Shown here: positions 6,734-33,967 of the stretch, piece by piece
Layout: every line of letters starts with the position of its first letter
Numbering within the stretch: the first letter of the stretch is position 1
Assembly (NCBI RefSeq): GCF_001194135.2
Contig: NC_068981.1
Span: 86,096,249-86,130,598, forward strand
Source of the DNA: Octopus bimaculoides
Taxonomy: Eukaryota
Direction: 5' to 3'
DNA length: 34,350 nt
Translations under genes and position numbers: made by a program
Notes under the pieces: generated by a model
The model's database searches: none
What the model was told of the DNA's origin: nothing
The model's input: the letters and a program-made list of their open reading frames with translations, nothing else

Positions 6734-7282
6734 NNNNNNNNNNNNNNNNNNNNNNNNNNNNNNNNNNNNNNNNNNNNNNNNNNNNNNNNNNNNNNNNNNN
6801 NNNNNNNNNNNNNNNNNNNNNNNNNNNNNNNNNNNNNNNNNNNNNNNNNNNNNNNNNNNNNNNNNNNNNNNNNNNNNNNNNNNNNNNNNNNNNNNNNNNN
6901 NNNNNNNNNNNNNNNNNNNNNNNNNNNNNNNNNNNNNNNNNNNNNNNNNNNNNNNNNNNNNNNNNNNNNNNNNNNNNNNNNNNNNNNNNNNNNNNNNNNN
7001 NNNNNNNNNNNNNNNNNNNNNNNNNNNNNNNNNNNNNNNNNNNNNNNNNNNNNNNNNNNNNNNNNNNNNNNNNNNNNNNNNNNNNNNNNNNNNNNNNNNN
7101 NNNNNNNNNNNNNNNNNNNNNNNNNNNNNNNNNNNNNNNNNNNNNNNNNNNNNNNNNNNNNNNNNNNNNNNNNNNNNNNNNNNNNNNNNNNNNNNNNNNN
7201 NNNNNNNNNNNNNNNNNNNNNNNNNNNNNNNNNNNNNNNNNNNNNNNNNNNNNNNNNNNNNNNNNNNNNNNNNNNNNNNNNN
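6734..7282. other. Assembly gap (N run)
   Basis: 549 N. Confidence 1.
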
Positions 7283-8964: not shown

Positions 8965-9260
8965 GGTACTTATTCTATTGGTATGTTTTTTTTTGGTGGG
9001 GGAGGGGGCTAAACTGCTAAGTTATGGATATGTAAACAAACCAACATCAGTTGTCAAGCAGGGGTTTAGGATATACACAAACATAAACACACACATACAT
9101 ATGACAGGCCTCCACACAGTTTCCATCAACCAAATTCACTCACAAGGCATTAGTGAGCCTGAGGCTATAGAGGAAGTCATTTGCCTAAGGTGCCATGTTG
9201 TGGGACTGAACTTGAAACCATGTAGTTGTAGAGTGGACTTCTTAACCACACAGCTATGTC
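8965..9260 (-). mobile_element. SINE type A, degenerate
   Basis: Reverse complement of the type A head and body (CTTAACCACACAGCTATG; GGTACTTATTCTATTGG). Confidence 0.7.
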
Positions 9261-9349
9261 TATGTCTGTATAACTATAAGAAAACAAAAGAAATTTTTTT
9301 ATTTATTATTTATTTATCCTTCTTCCAAAATTCTTCCTGTGATATTTAA

Positions 9350-12890: not shown

Positions 12891-13249
12891 TCTATTTTCT
12901 TTTACTTCTTTAATTCTTTTGACTGCAACCATGCTGGAGCACCACCTTGAGGAGTTTTAGTTGAACAAATCGACCCCAGCCTCATTTGCTGAACTGCTAA
13001 GTCACAGGGACGTAAACACACCAACACCAGTTATCAAGTGGTGATGAGGGAACAAACACAGACAAAAAGACACACACACACACATATATATATATATACG
13101 TATATATATGGTGGGCTTCTTTCAGTTTCCGTCTACCAAATGTACTCACAAGGCCTTGGTCGGTCCGAGGCTATAGTAGAAGACACTTGCTCAAGGTGCC
13201 ATGCAGTGGGACTGAACCTGGAACCATGTGGTTGGGAAGCAACTTCTTA
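12891..13249 (-). mobile_element. SINE type A
   Basis: Reverse complement of the type A tail (GACTGCAACCATGCTGGAGCACC) and head. Confidence 0.8.
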
Positions 13250-13760
13250 GAAGACCTATGTATGAATAGGAGTAAGAATCCTGTAGAGGTGAATGGTTTC
13301 TACAGGCTGGTCACAAGTAGGTTTTATGTGCCCCATAGAAAGAAATCAAGGCTGTTGAAGCCAGATATTCAAATAAATGCAACAGAAAGATATCAAGAGA
13401 AAAGGAAAAGAGAGAGGAAGTGAGAGGGGGAAAGAGAGAGTATGGGAGATAGATGGGTAGGAGGGAAAGAGAGAGATAGGCAAAGAGAGAAATAGTAAGA
13501 GACAAAGTATCACACATGATGATGTTTACAAGCTTAGAGGAAAATTTAAAGACAATAAACATAAAGGTAGATCAAGCTCACTTACAAGGAAAATTTATCT
13601 GAAAGAAAAATCACAATTCTTTAGAAGTAGTTAATTAATTGATGCTAATTGTGGGCAGCAAATAGGTGGGGAAAATCAAAATAGCTGAGCAGCATGTTGA
13701 AGCTATGTTACTTGGATGAAGCCAAAAGTTCAAGTGGATGCAACAGAGAAAGAGATACTA

Positions 13761-15250: not shown

Positions 15251-15352
15251 CATTGCACCTTGTGTAATATACAATGTTCTTTTTGCAGTTGATATATAAG
15301 TTTGTTGCAAAAATGGTGCTATCATGGCACATATGTAATGCTTTCAAGATTG

Positions 15353-15746
15353 CAGGAGTGGCTGTGTGGTAAGTAACTTGCTTACCAACCACATGGTTCC
15401 AGGTTCAGTCCCACTGCGTGGCACTTTGGGCAAGTGTCTTCTACTATAGCCTCGGGCTGACCAAAGCCTTGTGAGTGGATTTGGTAGACAGAAACTGAAA
15501 GAAGACCGTCGTATATATGTATATGTATATATATATATATGTGTGTGTTTGTCCCCCCAACATCGCTTGACAACCGATGCTGGTGTGTTTACGTCCCTGT
15601 AACTTAGCGGCTTGGCAAAAGAGACTGATAGAATAAATACTAGATCTACAAAGAATAAGTCCTGGGGTTGATTTGCTCGACTAAAGGCGGTGCTCCAGCA
15701 TGGCCGCAGTCGAATGACTGAAACAAGTAAAAGAGTAAAGAGAGTA
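15353..15746 (+). mobile_element. SINE type A, near-complete young copy
   Basis: Head GGAGTGGCTGTGTGGTAAG...GGTTCAGTCCC, central CACTTTGGGCAAGTGTCTTCTACTATAGCC, internal (AT)n, and tail GGTGCTCCAGCATGGCCGCAGTCGAATGACTGAAACAAGTAAAAGAGTAAAG. Confidence 0.9.
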
Positions 15747-16259: not shown

Positions 16260-16673
16260 NNNNNNNNNNNNNNNNNNNNNNNNNNNNNNNNNNNNNNNNN
16301 NNNNNNNNNNNNNNNNNNNNNNNNNNNNNNNNNNNNNNNNNNNNNNNNNNNNNNNNNNNNNNNNNNNNNNNNNNNNNNNNNNNNNNNNNNNNNNNNNNNN
16401 NNNNNNNNNNNNNNNNNNNNNNNNNNNNNNNNNNNNNNNNNNNNNNNNNNNNNNNNNNNNNNNNNNNNNNNNNNNNNNNNNNNNNNNNNNNNNNNNNNNN
16501 NNNNNNNNNNNNNNNNNNNNNNNNNNNNNNNNNNNNNNNNNNNNNNNNNNNNNNNNNNNNNNNNNNNNNNNNNNNNNNNNNNNNNNNNNNNNNNNNNNNN
16601 NNNNNNNNNNNNNNNNNNNNNNNNNNNNNNNNNNNNNNNNNNNNNNNNNNNNNNNNNNNNNNNNNNNNNNNNN
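16260..16673. other. Assembly gap (N run)
   Basis: 414 N. Confidence 1.
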
Positions 16674-16759: not shown

Positions 16760-17063
16760 AGTACAGCCAATGCCGGAATACGGATAGCTTATCTTGATGA
16801 GTCTGACCTCTGTCTAAGTGATTCCGACCAATCTCATAATGACAACGTATCCATACCTGAACCATACAGTGAAGTCATTCCAGAAGTGACATCCCCTGAT
16901 TACTCAGAAAGCAGTGTTCCAATTCGATACTATAAAACAAATCCACCAAAAGATCCTGAAGGATGGCAGAATCAGATAGATTATTTCTTCTCAGTGAGTT
17001 CATTGGCGCTAAACATCAGTTCGATCCTACACTTTGCATCATGTGCTGCTAAAAATGGTGGAG
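16760..17063 (+). CDS. SLC6/NSS-family transporter-like gene, coding exon A (N-terminal tail + TM1)
   Basis: Poly-T acceptor ttttttttAG at 16758-59 and donor G|GTTAGT at 17064. Open frame STANAGIRIAY...DPEGWQNQIDYFFSVSSLALNISSILHFASCAAKNGG(G), which aligns without gaps to the SLC6 RxxW...KNGGG segment. 304 nt, ends in phase 1. Confidence 0.88.
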
Positions 17064-17114
17064 GTTAGTTGAACATTTTCTATTCCTTTATTTTATTAAA
17101 GAAGTACCTTCCAT

Positions 17115-17162
17115 CATTGTCATCATCATCATCATCGTCGTCGTCGTCGTCGTCATCATCAC

Positions 17163-17193
<31 letters not shown>

Positions 17194-17812
17194 GTCATCA
17201 TCATCGTCATCATCGTCGTCGTTTTAACGTCTACATTGCTATGCATAAATCAAATGGAATTCACTGAGGCAGATTTTCTCCAACCAGATGCCTTTCCTTG
17301 CATCAAGCTGCTGCTGTTTCCAAGTGAGATGATATTTCTTCCTGGTCAGATATGCTTTCAGGAAAGATCTAGAAGTGAATGACACCATACAATGTCAAGG
17401 CACAGAGACACAAACACACAACACACCTGCACATACACATGTACATGCATCCCCTGCCCCACAAGCCTGTCGTATACATATATATATGTGTATGTGTGTG
17501 TGTATGTCTTTGAGTCTACGTTTATCCCCACCACCACCACCACCACTTGACAAACAGTGTTGGTGTGCTTACATTTCCCATAGCTTAGTGATTTGGCAAA
17601 AGAGCCCTACAGAATAAGTACACACACACACACACACACCATGTATATATGCATTAGGCTCCTTTCAGTTTCCATCTATTAATCTCCACTTATATGACCT
17701 TGGTCAATCCAGAGCTACAGTATGTCATTTGGCCAAGGTGTCGTGCAGTGGGACTGAACCCAAAACCATGTGATTGGAAAGCAAATTTCATAACCACATA
17801 GCCATGCCCGCA
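17115..17812 (-). mobile_element. SINE type B with (CAT)n tail, apparently interrupted by a plus-strand type A fragment (~17520-17620)
   Basis: (CAT/CGT)n at 17115-17222, reverse RTE-like tail at 17222-17400, and reverse head at 17655-17812. Confidence 0.6.
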
Positions 17813-18142: not shown

Positions 18143-18850
18143 CTGTGTGGTGAGGCTGTTGTGAAGCTGTTTGCTTCCCAATCACAACAGGGCACTGGAT
18201 GTCACCTTGGGCAAGTGTTTTCTACTATAACCCCCGACTGAGAAAAGCAAAAGCCTTTGCTGGATGGATAGGTGGATGTTGAAAGGAACCTGTCATGTGT
18301 ATGTGTGTGTGTGTGCGTGCATGCGTGTGTGTGTGTGTGTGTGTGTGTATGTGCATGCATGTAAGGTGTGTGTGTGTGTGTGCATACTTGCATGAAATAC
18401 ATATGTATGTGTGTGTGCATATTTGCATGTATTACATGTGTGTGTACATGTAACACATGTGTATGTGAGTATGCATGCAGGTGCTTGCATGTAATACATA
18501 TTTATGTATGTGTGTGTGTGTATGTGTGTGCCTGCTTGCATGTAATATATATGTTTATGTGTGCTTGCCTGTGATACATGTTTGTGTGTGTGTGCTTGTG
18601 TGTGCATGCTTGCATGTAATACTATGGTGGTGGTGGTGGTGGCGGTGGTGTTGGTGGTGGTGGTGGTAGTGGTGCTGATGATGGTCATGGAAGTGGTAAC
18701 GGTAGTGATGATGATGATGATGATGATGATGATGACGGTGACTATTATAGTGATGATGATGACGATGATGATGATGATGGCGATGACTATTACAGGAATG
18801 ATGATGGGGTGGTGATGGTGGTAGAAGTAGTGATGATGATGATGATCTGG
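18143..18850 (+). repeat. SINE head remnant followed by degenerate (TG/CATG)n and (GGT)n/(GAT)n low-complexity tracts
   Basis: CACCTTGGGCAAGTGTTTTCTACTAT at ~18203, followed by ~550 bp of simple repeats. Confidence 0.75.
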
Positions 18851-19321
18851 TTAAGGAGCACATTTGGCATTATAACATATGCATTATACTCTGTCATAAT
18901 GGGGGTACAGTGTATAAATTTGGAAACGTTAAGATTCTTTGCTCACCATTCAGTTTCTGATGTTTGTAGACTCTTGTGATGGCCACAGCAATTGGTGAAA
19001 ATGGTGAAGTGTAACAGTTTATATGCTTCTTCACTGATCTTTACTTACATCCACAGAATGTAGAATTAACACTGATATTTTTCTATCCTTTTACTGATTA
19101 TCTGGACTGAGTGAGAAAGAATGTGTTCTGTGAAGCTGTTATATTTGTGTTATGGGTGATTGGGATAATTTATTATTTAGCAGCAGGGCTGGGGGTTTTA
19201 TGGCAACATAAAACAGTGCTCCTCTTGTGTCTAGATGACCATTTATTTTGTATTTTCATTCAGACATTGCTGGTCTACAAATGTGGTTTGTGGGCTGTCT
19301 GTGACAATACAAAGAATACTA

Positions 19322-19960
19322 GCATGGCTGTGTGGTTAAGAAGCTTTCTTCCAAACCATGTGGTCTTAGGTTCAGTCTCACTTCATAGCACCTTAAGAAA
19401 GCACCTTCCACTATAGTCCCAGACCAACCAAAGCTTTATGAGCAGATCTGGCAGATGGAAACTGAAAGAAGCTTGTTTTGTGTGTGTGGGTGTGTGTATG
19501 TGTGTGTGCATGTGTATGTGCATGTGTACACATGAGAGAGAGAGTGTGTGTATGTATGCATGTATATGTGCATATATGTGTGTGTGTCTTATTTGTATGT
19601 GGATGTGTGGGTGTTATTTGTGTGTATATGTATATGTGCATACATGCATGAGTATACGTGCATGTGTGTGTGTGTGTGCATGTGTGTGTTTGCATCTGCC
19701 CTTGTCTAGACATCATGTGACTGTTGCATGGGAGCATCATTGTCATACAAGAGAGGTTGCTTGTTTCCAGATTTCCACAAAAACATGTCCAGCTATGGGA
19801 AAATATTACCTTCATCGGAAGCAGGAGAAAGCTGGCCACAGGAAGGGCATTCAGCCACAGAAAATTTGCTTCAACAAATTCCATCTGATCCATGCAAGCA
19901 TGGAAAAGTGAACATGACGATGACGATGATGACAATGGCGACAATGATGACAACGACGAT
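19322..19960 (+). mobile_element. SINE type B, complete, with internal TG-rich tract
   Basis: Head GCATGGCTGTGTGGTTAAG. Tail AGGAAGGGCATTCAGCC...CCATGCAAGCATGGAAAAGTGAACATGACGATG. Confidence 0.8.
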
Positions 19961-20044
19961 TTCTAATTTGTTTTGACTTATTGGTATTTGTATGATGTCT
20001 ATGATTAGTGTTTGTATGATGTCTTCTGGGATATGCCACAGGTG

Positions 20045-20205
20045 CAGGCATAGCTGTGTGGTAAGAAGCTTGCTTCCCAATCACATGGTTCCGGGTTCAG
20101 TCCCACTGCGTGTCACCCTGGGCAAGTGTTTTCTGCTATAGCCTTGGGCTGACCAAAGCCTTGTGAGTAGATCTGGTAGACAGAAACTGAAAAAAGCCTG
20201 TCATA

Positions 20206-20244
<39 letters not shown>

Positions 20245-20470
20245 ATGTCTTTGTGTCTGTGTTTGTCCCCCATCACCACTTGACAACCGGTGTTGGTCTG
20301 TTTATGCCCCTGTAATTTAATGATTTGGCAAAAGAGAACAATAGAGTACGTGTACTAAGCTTAAGAAATAAGTCCTGAGGTTTATTTGTTTGACTAAAAC
20401 CCTTCCAGGCAGAGCTCCAGCATGGCTGTAGTCAAATAACTGAAGCAAGGAAAAGATAAAAGAAAGAATA
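20045..20470 (+). mobile_element. SINE type A, complete
   Basis: Head, body and tail match 15353-15746. Confidence 0.85.
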
Positions 20471-20565
20471 TGAACTTGAAACATAGAATCCATGTATAGA
20501 AGGTTATGTTTTAAAAACACAGTGGGAACAGAAAATGCAGGAAATATTAGAGAATTAGGCACATG

Positions 20566-20995
20566 TGTGGCAGTGTGGTAAGAAGCTCGCTTCCCAACCA
20601 CATGGTTCTGGGTTCAATCTCACTGTGTGGCACCTTGGGCAAATGTCTTCTACTATAGCCTTGGGCCGACCAAAGCTTTGTGAGTGGATTTGGTAGACCG
20701 AAACTGAAAGAAGCCCATTGTGTGTATATATATATTTATATATACATATATGTATATGTTTATGTGTGTGTATCTTTGTGTCTGTGTTTGTCCCCCCACC
20801 ATTGCATGACAACTGATATTGGTGTGTTCATGTCCCTGTATCTTAGCAGTTCGGCAAAAGGGATGATAGAATAAGTACAATGCTTACAAAGAATAAGTCC
20901 TGGAGTCAATTTCTCTGACTAAAAAACCCTTTGAGGTGGTGCTCCAGCATAGCTGCAGTCAAATGACTGAAGCAAGTAAAAGAATAAAAGAATAA
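20566..20995 (+). mobile_element. SINE type A, complete
   Basis: Head, body and tail match 15353-15746. Confidence 0.85.
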
Positions 20996-21656: not shown

Positions 21657-22002
21657 TGAGGGGGTACCCAATAGTAACTGGAAACGTTCTCTATGAGACA
21701 AGCCCATTGTAGTTCAGGCTTCTGCTGCTAGAAGTCGCTTAATGCAACCCTCAGGTATCAGTCTACCGACCACCATCATCATGTTAGGTCGTATTTTTGC
21801 GATGGCTGAAATGAAGGAACAGCATACTTCTGTGAAATTTTGTTTCCTGTTGGGAAAAACAGTGGTTGAAACGGTTGTTGTACTTCAAACAGTTTACAAG
21901 GACGCTGCCATGAGCAAAACACATGTTTACGAGTGGTTTTCATGCTTCAGGAATGGTCACTTGTCATTTGAAGACCAACTTCGTTCAGGGCAACTGTCAA
22001 CA
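21657..22002 (+). mobile_element. Mariner transposon 5' fragment (TIR + N-terminal HTH)
   Basis: TA followed by TGAGGGGGTACCCAATAGTAACTGG (mariner-type TIR). Encodes MAEMKEQHTSVKFCFLLGKT..ET...LQTVYKDAAMSKTHVYEWFSCFRNGHLSFEDQLRSGQLST. Confidence 0.85.
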
Positions 22003-22660
22003 AGAGATAAGGAAACCATGATGGTCCTCTGGAGGACACTTGTCCTAAGCCACTTTGGCTATTGCTTGCAGCTATGGTCACCAACTAGTGTCAAATTAAT
22101 TGCAGAATTTGAGGCAATCCAACGAAGTGACACAAACAAGATAGCCTCTATGCAGTATATAAGCTACTGGAAAAGACTCAAGAGAATAAGACTCTATTCC
22201 TTAGAGCATAGGCGAGAAAGATATGCCGTAATATACATCTGGAAGATCTTGAAGGGACTTGTCCCAAACTTTGGCATTGAGAGTTACACTAATACGAGAA
22301 CACGGCGCCACTGCATAATGCGAAGGACTCCAAATTTGCCATCAAGATATAGGACAAGTTACCGCAACAGCCTGGGTATCAGGGGACCATAGCTCTTTGG
22401 TATCCTCCCAAAGGACCTGAGAGACCTGCATGGGGTGAATATAGGTATTTTCAAAACAAAACTGGATCTCTTACTGTCAAATGTCCCAGATGAACCAACT
22501 TCACAGCAGGAAGTGCACATGAAGGTAGTGGCATCAAACACCCTCATGCACCCAGTGTCAATTTCTAAAAAGAATTAGTGAAGTAAACGTATGTAGCAAC
22601 ACCAAATGGTAGTGCCCCAGCATGGCCACAGCTCATGAGCTGAAACTAGATCAAATGAAG
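22003..22660 (+). mobile_element. CR1/L2-group LINE, 5'-truncated (post-RT C-terminus + 3' end)
   Basis: Encodes RDKETMMVLWRTLVLSHFGYCLQLWSP...EAIQR...SYWKRLKRIRLYSLEHRRERY..IYIWKILKGLVPN. The frame continues past a TAG at 22390. The 3' end reads GTGCCCCAGCATGGCCACAG...CTGAAACTAG. Confidence 0.8.
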
Positions 22661-22941: not shown

Positions 22942-23931
22942 NNNNNNNNNNNNNNNNNNNNNNNNNNNNNNNNNNNNNNNNNNNNNNNNNNNNNNNNNNN
23001 NNNNNNNNNNNNNNNNNNNNNNNNNNNNNNNNNNNNNNNNNNNNNNNNNNNNNNNNNNNNNNNNNNNNNNNNNNNNNNNNNNNNNNNNNNNNNNNNNNNN
23101 NNNNNNNNNNNNNNNNNNNNNNNNNNNNNNNNNNNNNNNNNNNNNNNNNNNNNNNNNNNNNNNNNNNNNNNNNNNNNNNNNNNNNNNNNNNNNNNNNNNN
23201 NNNNNNNNNNNNNNNNNNNNNNNNNNNNNNNNNNNNNNNNNNNNNNNNNNNNNNNNNNNNNNNNNNNNNNNNNNNNNNNNNNNNNNNNNNNNNNNNNNNN
23301 NNNNNNNNNNNNNNNNNNNNNNNNNNNNNNNNNNNNNNNNNNNNNNNNNNNNNNNNNNNNNNNNNNNNNNNNNNNNNNNNNNNNNNNNNNNNNNNNNNNN
23401 NNNNNNNNNNNNNNNNNNNNNNNNNNNNNNNNNNNNNNNNNNNNNNNNNNNNNNNNNNNNNNNNNNNNNNNNNNNNNNNNNNNNNNNNNNNNNNNNNNNN
23501 NNNNNNNNNNNNNNNNNNNNNNNNNNNNNNNNNNNNNNNNNNNNNNNNNNNNNNNNNNNNNNNNNNNNNNNNNNNNNNNNNNNNNNNNNNNNNNNNNNNN
23601 NNNNNNNNNNNNNNNNNNNNNNNNNNNNNNNNNNNNNNNNNNNNNNNNNNNNNNNNNNNNNNNNNNNNNNNNNNNNNNNNNNNNNNNNNNNNNNNNNNNN
23701 NNNNNNNNNNNNNNNNNNNNNNNNNNNNNNNNNNNNNNNNNNNNNNNNNNNNNNNNNNNNNNNNNNNNNNNNNNNNNNNNNNNNNNNNNNNNNNNNNNNN
23801 NNNNNNNNNNNNNNNNNNNNNNNNNNNNNNNNNNNNNNNNNNNNNNNNNNNNNNNNNNNNNNNNNNNNNNNNNNNNNNNNNNNNNNNNNNNNNNNNNNNN
23901 NNNNNNNNNNNNNNNNNNNNNNNNNNNNNNN
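22942..23931. other. Assembly gap (N run)
   Basis: 990 N. Confidence 1.
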
Positions 23932-24550: not shown

Positions 24551-24682
24551 GAGCATTCTGTGTTGCCTACCTAGTTCTGATGATGATATGTGGACTGCCC
24601 CTTGCATATCTAGAAACTTGTATAGGCCAATATGCTAAAGGAGGTCCGGTTATTGTTTGGAAGATCATGCCGATTGCTAAAG
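24551..24682 (+). CDS. SLC6-like gene, coding exon B (TM2, IL1)
   Basis: Acceptor gttatttcAG and donor AAG|GTTACT. Encodes (G)AFCVAYLVLMMICGLPLAYLETCIGQYAKGGPVIVWKIMPIAK(G), matching the SLC6 GAFLIPY...GxPLxxxExxxGQ...W...P..KG pattern. 132 nt, phase 1-1. Confidence 0.93.
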
Positions 24683-28131: not shown

Positions 28132-28269
28132 GTCTTAGCTGGGCAATGTTAGTGGTTACAATCCTTATTGCCATGTATTATAGTGTTATAATGTCTTGGA
28201 GCCTTTACTATGCTGGGATGTCCATTATACAACCTTTGCCATGGATATGTAGTAAAACATATACAAACA
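28132..28269 (+). CDS. SLC6-like gene, coding exon C (TM3, start of EL2)
   Basis: Acceptor ttaatttatAG and donor A|GTGAGT. Encodes (G)LSWAMLVVTILIAMYYSVIMSWSLYYAGMSIIQPLPWICSKTYTN, matching the SLC6 YYN.I..W.LYY and LPW.C motifs. 138 nt, phase 1-1. Confidence 0.93.
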
Positions 28270-29120
28270 GTGAGTACACTTTTTTTTTTCTGTTTTGTGC
28301 AAACTCAGTTTTGACATCAGTCAATGAAAGGATAAATTGCCCTTTCTATTTCATATGAAAGGATAGACTGAACTTTATATTTTTTTAAATGAAAAATTTC
28401 AGAGCAGTTAATGTAAATTTCTATTCTTGAATTTGACTGTTCTGTAAATCTAAATGTCAAATGCTCACTTCTCATTCAATTTTGCCGCCACCTCACCCTT
28501 GCCTCTTCTTTTCTTTTCTTTTTTATGTCTTTCTTTCCTTCTTCCTATCTCATTCAGTTTCCCTCCTACTTCTTGTTTATGTTTGAAGTTCACATTATCT
28601 TGCATTCCCCTTCAGTTGCAGCCAGTTTCTCAATCACAGGGGATATAAAAGTCTACTGTATTTCATTTATTTTTCTCCTGTTGTCTTTACTCTGAGAAAG
28701 AAGTCTGTCTGAAAGGTTGGACATACCACTCCCCACAGGAATTTCACTGTACTCCTTTTGTCACTTTTTCTAGATAATACAAGTATTGCCAATGCAGACT
28801 TACCACTAGTTTTCATGGATTCTGTTTCATCTGTTTTATATTTTCAATAAAGTTATACCAATAACTCTTGTAAACACCATTTAAAGTGTTGAAGTATAAA
28901 AAGGTTATTTCTAACTGAAATGCTAATGACCCTATTTCTCAATGGAATTATATTTCCTTTAAAATTATTTCAATATAGCATGTTCTTTTTCACTTTGTTT
29001 TGTTTTTTCTTTACAGAAAACATAATTAAAAAATTTATTATTTCCTGAATATTGAATCACAGCTCTCATTTGAAAGTTGTTGCATGCTTGCTGCATGAAA
29101 ATAATTACAATTATATTTTC

Positions 29121-29550
29121 GGGCAAGGCTGTGTGGTTTGGAAGTTTGCTTCCCAATCACTTGGGTCTGAATTCAGTCTCAACATGTGGCACACTGGGCA
29201 AGTGTTTTCTACTATACCCCCAAGCCAGCCAGAGCCTTATAAGTAGATCTGGTGAGCAGAAACTGAAAGAAGCCCATTGTATATGTATATATATATGTTT
29301 GTATGTGTGTGTGAGTATGTGAATTTTTGTGCCTTCTTGTCTCAATATTGTATGATTGTTGTAAATGAATGTCATTCATTTCCAATCAATATTCTGCATA
29401 AACATGTCAGGCCAAGGGGAAATATTAACTTGCTTGGAAACAGGTAAGGGTTGATGACAGGAAAGGCATCTGACCATAAAAAATCTACCTTAAAAACTCT
29501 GCCAGACCTATGCAAGCATGGGAAAGTGGACATTAAATAAATAATGATGA
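29121..29550 (+). mobile_element. SINE type B, complete
   Basis: Head GGCTGTGTGGTTTGG. Tail AGGAAAGGCATCTGACC...ATGCAAGCATGGGAAAGTGGACATTAAAT. Confidence 0.8.
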
Positions 29551-29926: not shown

Positions 29927-30086
29927 GCAACAATCCCCTTTGTGAATCCTCATTTCTTACGTCACATTCATATCAACATCACCAAGAACGGAATCAACAG
30001 CATGTTGGTTTGTTTCTTCATATAAATACAACAAACACAAGCCTTGCAACTGCCCTCTATAACTTACCTAGTGGCATCTATTTTCA
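29927..30086 (+). CDS. SLC6-like gene, coding exon D (extracellular loop 2)
   Basis: Acceptor tactcttttctcacAG and donor CA|GTAAGT. The phase fits both neighbouring exons (1 in, 2 out). Encodes (S)NNPLCESSFLTSHSYQHHQERNQQHVGLFLHINTTNTSLATALYNLPSGIYF(Q), with the second EL2 Cys and two N-glycosylation sequons (NTT, NTS). Confidence 0.85.
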
Positions 30087-30721: not shown

Positions 30722-32095
30722 CATTCATCATCGTCATCATCATCATCATCATCATCATTAACGTCCGTTTTCCATGCTGGCATGGTTGGACGGTTTGACT
30801 AAGGTCTGGAAAGCCAGTGGCTGCACCAGGCTCCAATATGATCTGGCAATGTTTCTACAGTTGGATGCCCTTCTTAACACCAACCACTCCAAGAGTGTAG
30901 TGGGTGCTTTTTACATGTCACTGGCACAGGAGCCAGTCAGGCAGGCCTGGCATTGTTCATGTTTGGATAGTGCTTTTTACATACCACCAACAAGGGAGCC
31001 AGTCAGGGTACTGGCATCAGCTACATTCGGATGGTGCTTTTTACATGCCACTGGCACAGGAGCCAGTCAGGGGGTATTGGCATTGGTCACATTCGGATGG
31101 TGCTTTTTATGTGCCACCAGCTTGGGAGCCAGTCAGTGGGCACTGGCTACAGCTACGATATTGGTTTTAGTTGACTCAACAGGTCTTCTCAAGCATATCA
31201 TATTGCCCCATTCATCAGGGGTACTCTTAACTGGGCTAGACATGCATGGCTGCGATCTCCCTTTAGTTGCCGGGTCTTTTCAATCACAGTATATCTCCAA
31301 AGGTCTTGGTCTCCTGTCATTGCCTCTGTGAGGCCCAATGTTCGAAGGTCATGCTCCACCACCTCATCCCAGGTCTACCTATTCCACCGGTTCCTTCCAC
31401 AGTTAGGGAGTGACACTTCCTCACACAGCTGTCCTCATCCAAACATAAAACATGACCACACAGTGCAGTTGTCTCTCTTGCACACCACATTTGATGCTTC
31501 TTATGCCCAACTTTTCTCTCAGGGCGCTTACACTCAGTCATATATGCACACAGACATTACACATCCAGCAGATCATACTAGCTTCATTTCTTGCAAGCCT
31601 ACGCATGTCCTCAGCATTCTCAGAGTAATCACCCCTATTACAGACTTGGTCACCTAGGTAGCGGAAGATATTAACTACTTCTAGTTTCTCCCCCTGGCAT
31701 GTGATGAAATCTGTTTTCTGTACATTTTCAGTGTTTATTGCCCCTGTGCATCTGCCACATACAAAAACTATCTTCCTGGTTAACCTTCCTTTGATATTGC
31801 TGCACCTTTTATGTGTCCATAGCTTACACCGGGTACATGGTATGGAGTTTCTACCTACGCCCTTTCTACAGATCGAGTAGGGCCATCTACCTGAAGGGGT
31901 TAGTGATTTGACAGCCTTCCTACTTACTAAGACTTTGGTTTTTGCTAGGTTAACTCTAAGGCCTTTCAATTCTAGACCTTGCTTCCGCACCCTAAACTTA
32001 GTCTCTAGTTCTGGCAGTGATTCAGCTATTAGAGCAAGGTCATCAGCATAGAGGAGCTTCCAGGGGCAGCCTGTCTTGAATTACTTTGTTATTGC
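30722..32095 (-). mobile_element. RTE-clade LINE, 5'-truncated (RT C-terminus with YADD, PHD-like finger, 3' UTR, (ATG)n tail)
   Basis: CPWKLLYADDLALIAESL (YADD at 32050-32039), then GLRVNLAKTKVL, FRYLGD and GHVLCLDEDSCV...GRPGMRW. The frame has frameshifts and stops, and the 3' end is GGACGTTAATGATGATG. Confidence 0.88.
30899..31165. repeat. Four tandem ~65 bp units in the RTE 3' UTR
   Basis: GGTGCTTTTTACATGCCACTGGCACAGGAGCCAGTCAGGG...CTGGCAT repeated four times. Confidence 0.8.
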
Positions 32096-32515: not shown

Positions 32516-33725
32516 TTGGGTTGGCCAAAAAGTCTGTCCAGTTTTTGTCAACACTACATGTCAAGCACTCTAATAAGTCTGTCAATCTGTCCCTTGCACA
32601 TGTGCACTCATTAGATACTTGATACTTCAACGTAGTTCAATGTGAACTTGCAATGAGACAGGTTGCATATTGTGTGCTGAGGATCACCTTGAAAGTGGAA
32701 AACCAAAACAAACATTACTGACAACTCAAGCTTTTCTATTTAAAATAAAAAAAGCGTGGAAATCTGCAAGAAGATATGTGCTGTGTACAGAGAGAATGCC
32801 ACTACAGAACATGTGTGCCAGAAGTGGTTTTCAAGATTTTGATTGAGAAATTTTTTGATTCAAGAGCGCACCTTGCTCTGGTTGGCCAACTGAGATTAAC
32901 AGCAACACCAACCACCTTTATACAACTGAGATGATTGCAGATATTCCCCAAATATCAAAATCAAGTGTTGAAAACCATCTCCTTCAACTTGGCTACATCA
33001 GCAAGCTTGATTCTTGGGTCCCACATCTATTGGATGAGGCTAACCTCACCCAACAGATTTTCATCTGTGATTCATCGCAGAAACACAAACAAAATTACCA
33101 TTTTTTAAAGTGAATGATGATGAGGGATGAAAACAATGCAAAACATGAGCAATCATGAGAAAAGTGTGACAAACCACTACAAACAACCTCTAAAGCAGGA
33201 CTTCATCCAAAGAAAGTTATGCCTCCTATTTGGTGGGACTGGAAGGGTGTTGTCTTTTACGAGCTTCTTCCCACAGACAGGACCATCTATTTGAATGTGT
33301 ACTGTAACCAGCTGGACAAATTAAATGTAGTGATCCACCAGAAGTGTTCAGCACTTGCTAATCATAAAGTCATTGTCCTTCATCACAACAATGCCAGATC
33401 ACACACTTTTTTGTACACATGACAGAAGTTACTGAGGCTTGCCTGGGAAGTTTTGTCACACCCTACATATTCACCTTCAGATTTCCACCTCTTTCACTCT
33501 CTTCAAAATCCACCGAATGGATAGACTTTCAACTCTGAAGAGGATGTAAAAATTCATCTGAAAGAGTTTTTCCCCAGTAAAGACAGTAATAAATCTACCT
33601 CAAAGATGGCAGGAGATATTGGGATGAAATGGTAACTATATCATTGATTGAATAAATTGCTTTAAATTTAAAACTTGAGTCTTATTTTCACTTAAAAAAC
33701 TGAACAGACTTTTTGGCCAACCCAC
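32516..33725 (+). mobile_element. Full-length decayed mariner (Hsmar1/cecropia-like), ~1.21 kb
   Basis: TA-flanked TIRs TTGGGTTGGCCAAAAAGTCTGTCCAGTTTTT and AAAAAACTGAACAGACTTTTTGGCCAACCCAC. Remnant motifs WVPHLL, RDEK, HPKKVM..IWWDWKGV..YELLP, HNNARSH and HP.YSPSDFHLF are interrupted by stops and frameshifts. Confidence 0.92.
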
Positions 33726-33843: not shown

Positions 33844-33967
33844 GCAGACACTGCTACTCCAGTCAGAAAAATCTATCTCTGGAAACTGGCAACTTGTTCT
33901 CTGTCTCCTTGCTACTTGGTTACTAGTATTTTTAATACTTATTAAAGGAATACAGTCAATGGCTAAG
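33844..33967 (+). CDS. SLC6-like gene, coding exon E (end of EL2, TM4, start of TM5)
   Basis: Acceptor tttcttttgttgttAG and donor AAG|GTAAGC. Encodes (Q)QTLLLQSEKSISGNWQLVLCLLATWLLVFLILIKGIQSMAK, matching the SLC6 W.L..CLL..W...F..I.KG..S.GK pattern. 124 nt, phase 2-0. Confidence 0.92.

Follow-up and report, generated by a model that had tools for sequence, protein, structure and literature searches.

Evidence for a maintained, atypical SLC6 gene in octopods with a rewritten first transmembrane segment

Can a gene of the SLC6 transporter family lose residues on which sodium-coupled transport depends and still be kept by selection, and if so, what might its product do? The question is raised by a stretch of 34,350 nt of the Octopus bimaculoides genome (NCBI RefSeq assembly GCF_001194135.2, contig NC_068981.1, positions 86,096,249 to 86,130,598 of the forward strand; 'the window' hereafter), which carries five exons of an SLC6 gene whose first transmembrane segment (TM1) is rewritten at residues otherwise treated as near-invariant mechanistic parts of well-understood SLC6 transporters. 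The original prediction, made from the DNA letters alone, described the gene as a maintained but atypical family member with intact exons. Our analysis bears this description out, with one correction: the rewriting of TM1 is real but not unique to the octopod gene, as several of the losses are shared by an uncharacterised, mollusc-wide set of proteins. The octopod paralogue and these relatives would together constitute a natural experiment in the uses of the LeuT fold without Na+ coupling. Our data are consistent with a model, in which we place about even credence, where the product is a conserved, catalytically degenerate SLC6 module that would assist a canonical partner and would not itself run as a Na+/Cl- symporter.

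The octopod gene and its TM1

The gene lies on the forward strand, where exons of 304, 132, 138, 160 and 124 nt (858 nt in all; Table 1) join into 286 codons with no stop. Every exon is bounded by an AG acceptor rich in pyrimidines and by a GT donor, with none of the ten splice signals broken, in agreement with the open frames and GT-AG sites first described. The five exon boundaries are also those of an annotated gene model from Argonauta hians (P0166), as located by tblastn of its segments. The intron phases had been called typical of the family, and comparison supports this: the phase-1 intron in the last Gly codon of the NGGG motif lies at the same position in one SLC6 domain of Lymnaea (d2, introduced below), and the phase-0 intron after GK appears to be matched in another (d1).

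The exon for the variable part of the second extracellular loop (EL2) was found by a phase-constrained scan for AG..GT intervals, which gave 71 candidates. The interval chosen, 29927-30086, has a consensus donor (TCA/gtaagt), the second loop cysteine and two N-glycosylation sequons, and is independently matched by the Argonauta annotation; an earlier candidate at about 28697-28748 was dropped in its favour on these grounds. The exon that follows, which encodes TM4, gives a weak match to the Pfam SNF profile (20.7 bits over profile positions 176-204, below the 27-bit gathering cut-off). At the 5' end, the exon at 16760..17063 contains no Met, and the first exon of the Argonauta model (35 aa) has no match within the window. 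The true first coding exon lies outside the window, which holds exons 2-6 (N-tail and TM1-TM4) of a gene that runs off its 3' end after TM4.

Membership of the predicted protein in the SLC6 family goes beyond chance resemblance because the Pfam SNF profile (PF00209) matches it over profile positions 2-127 with 117.6 bits (cut-off 27; E=8.5e-34), and we assign it as an SLC6 homologue on this basis. A phmmer search of PDB sequences with TM1-TM3 gave human DAT (hDAT; E=4.5e-29) and human NET (hNET) as its best matches, with GlyT2 scarcely behind (4e-28). Comparison with hDAT, hNET, GlyT2 and LeuT gives clear homology over TM1-TM4 at E values of about 1e-28, with TM1 ungapped and the intron positions the same.

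The TM1 of the window protein reads DPEGWQNQIDYFFSVSSLALNISSILHFASCAAKNGGGAFCVAY, and its phmmer alignment to hDAT contains no gap throughout the segment. With residues numbered as in LeuT, a conversion from hDAT that we take as established, every TM1 substitution listed in the original prediction is present: R5->P, G20->S, G24->N, G26->S, N27->S, R30->H and P32->A, with W8 and A22 retained. To these can be added the replacement of Trp at position 29 (hDAT W84) by Leu, Y33->S and V23->L. Elsewhere in the protein the Pro of TM2 has become Ala (GAFCVAY), YYN has become YYS in TM3, and SGK has become MAK, again as claimed. The features retained comprise W8, A22, F31, NGGGAF, the TM2 Tyr, GQ, the Tyr-Tyr of TM3, the EL2 cysteine pair and sequons, and W..LCL in TM4.

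The replaced residues include several with central roles in the transport cycle. N27 is a side-chain ligand of Na1; R30 closes the outer gate together with an Asp of TM10, and R5 has an Asp of TM8 as its partner at the inner gate. Glycines 24 and 26 permit the unwinding of TM1 at the place where its backbone holds the carboxylate of the substrate, and Asp at position 24 is the mark of monoamine carriers. On this footing the predicted octopod protein is without residues needed for Na+-coupled transport: the Na1 side-chain ligand is gone, as is one side of both gate salt bridges.

How rare these states are was gauged against 71 canonical TM1-TM4 segments drawn from the 150 best library matches, nearly all of which carry the canonical GLGNVWRFP. 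The TM1 positions singled out in the original prediction are 89-100% conserved in this reference, and the window protein departs at all of them, so that the description 'atypical' is apt. Columns with a departure are 86-100% conserved overall, and among the 43 columns that are at least 85% conserved the window and Argonauta proteins (the octopod pair) depart at about 14. Column 27 is Asn in 97% of the canonical segments and Ser in both octopods (codon TCG in the window). Columns 30 and 5 are Arg in 97% and 93%, respectively, and both octopods have H30 and P5. The glycines of the unwound segment (G24, or Asp, and G26) are likewise replaced, by N24 with S26 in the window and T26 in Argonauta. 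Asn at position 24 was absent from all other sequences examined, and Ala32 is confined to the octopod pair, Pro32 being present in every other sequence examined.

The Argonauta orthologue allows the fate of these residues to be followed in a second octopod. This 326 aa protein, named 'dopamine transporter-like' in an A. hians assembly (PMC12682272), surfaced through a profile of the d1 alignment described below. It is identical to the window protein at 241 of 286 residues (84.3%), without gaps. Its TM1 reads PEEWSNQIDYFFSVSSLALNLTSILHFASCAAKNGGG, with P5, S20, N24, S27, L29, H30 and A32 as in the window; position 26 alone differs among the rewritten sites (Thr for Ser). Over TM1 positions 8-41 the two octopods show only two differences, both conservative, and they agree at every one of the first 29 N-tail residues that the exon encodes. 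The P0166 gene range spans about 110 kb, and a second SNF model of 109 aa starts 58 bp downstream of it on the same strand (GCA_054771915.1).

Selection was tested on the protein level from the replacements between the window protein and P0166, together with 1000 simulations in which the window coding sequence was mutated neutrally up to the observed amino-acid divergence. Replacements fall at 16 of 170 positions in TM1-TM3 plus the TM4 core, against 21 of 51 in the variable EL2 (Fisher p = 9e-7). On BLOSUM62 they average +0.58, a value reached by none of the 1000 simulations (mean -0.50 +/- 0.25), and in no simulation was the number of core changes so small. A frame without stops survived in just 6% of them. 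The rewritten TM1 is being conserved and is not decaying, because the replacements avoid the core and are conservative beyond anything in the neutral simulations. We conclude from this comparison that the gene is under purifying selection, which supports the earlier view that it is maintained. Stops, frameshifts and broken splice sites, the usual signs of a pseudogene, are all lacking from the 858 nt, and a neutral substitution pattern is rejected; the gene may nevertheless have died recently in one lineage.

Relatives in other molluscs

An exhaustive HMMER search of 1.84 billion representative sequences returned 5334 matches, none of them more than 45% identical to the octopod protein and none of them the Argonauta orthologue, which was unlisted there. 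A word-indexed protein search with TM1-TM3 yielded only an unrelated fragment, 29% identical, and exon-1 peptides searched against metagenomes found nothing. The best-scoring matches with a non-canonical TM1 were all molluscan, and we name this set d1. It includes Lottia gigantea LOTGIDRAFT_92276, which at 45% identity is the most similar protein from outside the cephalopods, Potamilus streckersoni KAK3594646, and the N-terminal halves of Ylistrum balloti XP_060064335, Physella acuta XP_059161224 and Mytilus galloprovincialis VDH94761. Partial models are present in Lymnaea (P0167/P0234), Plakobranchus, Biomphalaria and Bulinus. Conservation of d1 among the gastropods is high, with 97% identity between Physella and Lymnaea in the TM6 exon. 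Literature searches found no described orphan clade of mollusc SLC6 proteins, and the d1 members held in databases are uncharacterised or misnamed predictions.

Identity between d1 and the octopod protein is 33-45%, and SGK is altered in both. The two depart from the canonical sequence at the same places, namely R5, V23, G26, N27 (in bivalve d1 only), Trp29, R30, Y33 and the TM2 Pro; at two of these, both have made the same change (Trp->Leu and Pro->Ala). In d1, Trp29 is replaced by Leu or Val and R30 by Lys or Gln, whereas the octopod gene has His at position 30. The octopod TM1 is the more derived of the two, with N24, A32 and S20 unique to it, yet it keeps the NGGG motif that has become HGGG in most d1 members. 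The window gene carries the full set of derived states that d1 members share (R5 lost, Trp29->L/V, R30 replaced, TM2 Pro lost and GQYxxGG). The last of these, in the form GQYxxGG(P/V), is confined to the octopod pair, to d1 (Lottia included) and to one Haliotis protein, among 99 GQ[YF]xxxG[PV] matches in all fetched proteins.

In the first neighbour-joining (NJ) tree the octopod pair joined bivalve d1, and with Lottia included the sister group of the pair consisted of d1 members only in 413 of 500 bootstraps, with strict monophyly in fewer than half. From these shared states and trees we regard it as likely, at moderate support, that the octopod gene belongs to the d1 lineage.

The full-length members of d1 give a view of the parts of the fold that lie beyond the window. 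The gate Phe of TM6 is lost in all of them, and they vary in which of the TM7 Asn, TM8 Na2 ligands and TM10 Asp they have lost, the last being gone in the three full-length members other than Lottia. Single ion-site residues are kept by some: N27 in Physella, Lymnaea and Lottia, and the TM8 Asp in Mytilus.

A second SLC6 domain, GlyT-like and closer to the canonical sequence, lies downstream of d1 on its strand in Ylistrum, Mytilus, Physella and Lymnaea (proteins and models P0002, P0004, P0005, P0155 and P0234); we call it d2. The domain coordinates show one predicted protein spanning d1 and d2 in Ylistrum, Physella and Mytilus. In Lymnaea stagnalis (CAXITT010000087.1, 1-28115) there are instead three consecutive SNF genes on the forward strand, comprising the first half of d1, the second half of d1 with the start of d2, and d2. 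Bivalves and gastropods share a conserved linker, WGPG..EP..P(D/E)YVICxPDx(F/Y)(R/K)P..LAx(L/I)TANLYxPN, which joins d1 to d2 in the models of all four species. The last d1 exon of Lymnaea ends in the consensus donor ATGCAG/gtaagc, and the next coding exon has a cag acceptor in the same phase (phase 0) with in-frame stops upstream of it. The conserved linker and the matching splice sites in Lymnaea favour the view that d1-d2 is a single polypeptide with 24 TM segments. Literature searches found no natural tandem SLC6 protein, and a profile of the C-terminal halves of d1 found no cephalopod fragment of TM5-TM12.

Degenerate SLC6 paralogues are not unprecedented among invertebrates. Partly degenerate TM1 sequences were seen elsewhere among the matches: two nematode copies in tandem read GIGNIITFP and GIGNIVSFP, a snail has DFTTLWRFP in the first of its two copies, and GLGNVLSFP and GLGSVWRFP also occur. 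The proteins concerned are P0104 (Caenorhabditis bovis), P0006 (Gigantopelta aegis), P0139 and P0001 (ENA). These nematode, snail and other sequences indicate that loss of gate or Na1 residues has recurred in invertebrate SLC6 paralogues.

Possible functions of the octopod protein

A canonical Na+/Cl--coupled cycle is unlikely in the octopod protein because N27, R30, R5 and glycines 24 and 26 have all been replaced, and stably so. The product is probably a folded, glycosylated membrane protein nonetheless, since the fold and packing motifs, the EL2 disulphide, the sequons and TM4 are kept. It would thus retain a LeuT-type fold without running the Na+/Cl--coupled cycle, and we propose that it may act as an accessory module in the assembly, trafficking or regulation of a canonical SLC6 partner, one that the gene models of other molluscs would place in a tether to d1. 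This proposal follows from the combination of a degenerate core with the d1-d2 linkage in those molluscs. Four functions had been offered in the original prediction, namely Na+ independence, a new substrate, a channel or sensor, and a non-transporting partner subunit, and the d1-d2 arrangement lends the last of these indirect support.

A more specific version, which we put forward only tentatively and think rather doubtful, is that the octopod gene encodes the N-terminal half of a 24-TM tandem SLC6, a pseudo-domain tethered by a conserved cytoplasmic linker to a working GlyT-like domain whose assembly, trafficking or gating it would control. Were this so, the protein would be an obligate heterodimer of pseudo-transporter and transporter, a type undescribed in SLC6. 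If the linkage in bivalves and gastropods is real, it offers a testable case of a pseudo-transporter that regulates a transporter.

Precedents for such a role come from outside the family. In yeast Ssy1 and Snf3/Rgt2, and in the degenerate halves of other tandem transporters, the fold has been kept, the catalytic residues lost and the gene maintained; Ssy1 and Snf3/Rgt2 belong to protein families other than SLC6. Our literature searches found no natural SLC6 example of a non-transporting sensor or partner homologue.

Several observations weigh against an accessory module of the d1 lineage. Coverage of the octopod gene is confined to the N-tail and TM1-TM4, with the 3' two-thirds beyond the window, and Ser27, His30 and Asn24 could still bind ions or protons. 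The P0166 model is marked partial and ends five codons into its next exon, a break that is either an annotation artefact or split model, or a real frameshift. Strict monophyly of the octopod and d1 sequences was recovered in 226-238 of 500 NJ bootstraps (45-48%; 226 for all eight sequences with Lottia included), and long-branch attraction is possible because a long-branch sequence from C. bovis intrudes in the NJ trees. Hidden Markov model (HMM) scores (d1, canonical, DAT and d2) do not separate d1 from canonical for the window, and are undiscriminating because d1 members are as distant from each other as from canonical proteins. The d1-d2 fusion itself rests on gene models, and read-through of the Lymnaea d1 donor would extend d1 by 23 aa and leave it as a stand-alone protein. 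Finally, neither 5.8 billion clustered sequences nor the representative library yielded a transcript-derived or annotated protein of this gene in the window's own species.

The absence of an own-species protein would also fit a window copy that is recently dead or unexpressed, with signs of constraint that predate its death, as would a first coding exon that is not in the window and an Argonauta model that breaks in its next exon. We consider this very unlikely. There are no stops or frameshifts and ten intact splice signals over 858 nt, neutral simulations stay open in only 6% of cases and never yield the conservative, loop-biased pattern, and long introns filled with transposable elements, together with assembly gaps, suffice to explain a missed annotation. 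The main rival to an accessory role is instead a working transporter with altered energetics or substrate (a uniporter independent of Na+, a carrier coupled to H+ or K+, or one for a solute that is not an amino acid), in which N24, S26, S27 and H30 would make up a new site. Purifying selection on TM1 itself, with its two conservative differences between the octopods at positions 8-41, would suit such a protein, as would the retention of the substrate-site TM3 Tyr, the TM2 Tyr, W8, A22 and NGGGAF and of single ion-site residues in some d1 members, and other LeuT-fold families do work without Na+. It sits poorly with the arginine lost from both gate salt bridges and with d1 relatives that have no TM6 gate Phe (all full-length members) and no TM10 Asp (the three besides Lottia). 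Moreover, a single new site shared by all is hard to reconcile with ion-site residues that differ from one d1 member to another, and we know of no Na+-independent SLC6; on balance we find an altered transporter fairly unlikely, if less so than the other alternatives.

It is improbable, in our estimation, that the gene branched within octopods from the monoamine (dopamine) transporter clade, in which case its likeness to d1 would reflect convergent relaxation and long-branch attraction. DAT and NET are the best PDB matches, Asn24 is one G->A transition away from the monoamine-type Asp, and strict monophyly with d1 falls below half of the bootstraps; however, the lead of DAT and NET over GlyT2 is negligible (4.5e-29 vs 4e-28), the window scores 147 bits with a DAT-type HMM against 185 bits with a non-DAT HMM, the defining Asp is absent, and GQYxxGG and the identical derived states tie the gene to d1. 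A monoamine transporter would be expected to carry Asp24 and to group with DAT, NET and SERT; in NJ trees the gene did not group with VDL-type sequences. The 'dopamine transporter-like' label of the Argonauta orthologue is unsupported for the same reasons (Asn24, the lower DAT-HMM score and no grouping with VDL-type sequences), and names such as 'dopamine transporter-like', 'glycine transporter 2-like' and 'serotonin transporter' are an unreliable guide to cell type or neurotransmitter in cephalopod atlases. Recoding of the transcript would offer a different escape: coleoids recode many transcripts, and a single A->G change in each would turn codons 24 (AAC), 26 (AGT), 28 (ATC) and 30 (CAC), at 17012-17032, into codons for Asp, Gly, Val and Arg, so that A-to-I RNA editing could partly restore a monoamine-like TM1 and make the protein more ordinary than the genome suggests. 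We give this almost no weight, as G->A transitions, the commonest type of mutation, explain the codon pattern alone, and P5, S20, S27, L29 and A32 are beyond restoration by editing. Use of the SLC6 fold for sensing or as a scaffold in signalling (a transceptor), or as a leak channel, without transport or a transporter partner, is quite improbable too. Loss of R5 favours inward-open, leaky states in monoamine transporters, and the 29 identical N-tail residues of the two octopods would fit a binding surface. Nothing in the window suggests signalling partners, however, and the d1-d2 linkage in other molluscs suggests a role related to transport. The precedent is SNF-12 of Caenorhabditis elegans, an SLC6 protein of no known substrate whose role is in signalling, together with STA-2, in epidermal immunity (PMC4681281). 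SNF-12 and the octopod gene are both invertebrate SLC6 members, and the known role of SNF-12 is not neurotransmitter uptake; the likeness between them is by analogy only. An accessory module of a canonical partner remains the reading that we prefer.

Features and repeats of the window

Coordinates of the exons, of TM1 and of the other features in the window are collected in Table 1.

Table 1. Exons, repeats and assembly gaps in the window (positions count from its first letter)
Feature	Position	Strand	Details
Coding exon, second of the gene	16760..17063	+	304 nt; cytoplasmic N-tail and TM1; ends in phase 1 in the last Gly codon of NGGG; acceptor tttctaatctttttttttag/AG, donor GTGGAG/gttagt; matches Argonauta P0166 residues 36-137; Pfam SNF match
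TM1 segment, LeuT positions 5-41	16955..17063	+	PEGWQNQIDYFFSVSSLALNISSILHFASCAAKNGG(G); ungapped alignment to hDAT; codon table; 16955 is the first base of CCT (Pro, LeuT R5), 17063 the last base of the TM1 exon, before G/gttagt
TM2 and following loop exon	24551..24682	+	132 nt; (G)AFCVAYLVLMMICGLPLAYLETCIGQYAKGGPVIVWKIMPIAK(G); carries GQYxxGGP; 91% identity to Argonauta
TM3 and start of EL2 exon	28132..28269	+	138 nt; (G)LSWAMLVVTILIAMYYSVIMSWSLYYAGMSIIQPLPWICSKTYTN; 86% identity to Argonauta
Variable EL2 exon	29927..30086	+	160 nt; second loop Cys (PLC), NTT/NTS sequons; 60% identity to Argonauta residues 228-280, ungapped
End of EL2 and TM4 exon	33844..33967	+	124 nt; ...GNWQLVLCLLATWLLVFLILIKGIQSMAK; ends in phase 0; 88% identity to Argonauta
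tRNA-like short interspersed element (SINE), about 220 nt	15348-15570, 19315-19537, 20040-20262, 20557-20779, 29116-29338		GGTTCAGTCCCACTG box; inverted near 13052-13245
Mos1-type HTH_48 open reading frame (ORF)	21742-22392	+	fused to unrelated sequence; decayed
mariner Transposase_1 fragment	32646-33632	+	broken by stops
PHD-finger-like ORF	31541-31990	-	in a decayed transposon piece
(CAT/CGT)n trinucleotide array	17112-17217		directly after the TM1 exon donor
Inverted copy of the (CAT/CGT)n array	18670-18803		1.5 kb downstream, same intron
Assembly gaps (runs of N)	6734-7282, 16260-16673, 22942-23931

The introns, of 7.5, 3.4, 1.7 and 3.8 kb, are rich in repeats, as the original prediction had noted: they are filled with tRNA-like SINE copies, mariner fragments and microsatellites, and the assembly of the window contains three N gaps. 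Sequence just upstream of the acceptor of the TM1 exon is missing because the gap at 16260-16673 ends 86 bp before that exon. A literature search with the SINE sequence found nothing. At least 10 SINE copies are present, in both orientations and ending in TA/TG microsatellites, and they fill the introns and the upstream region.

A 2.5 kb contig that ENA lists as metagenomic encodes P0001, an SLC6 fragment with an unspliced stretch, ..FYEPEAIVEIVSISPKM.., which resembles ORFs running through the SINE-like repeats of the window (for example, 8978-9349 and 13038-13250). Because of this resemblance, the contig may be cephalopod DNA that carries a different SLC6 paralogue, one with N27->S.

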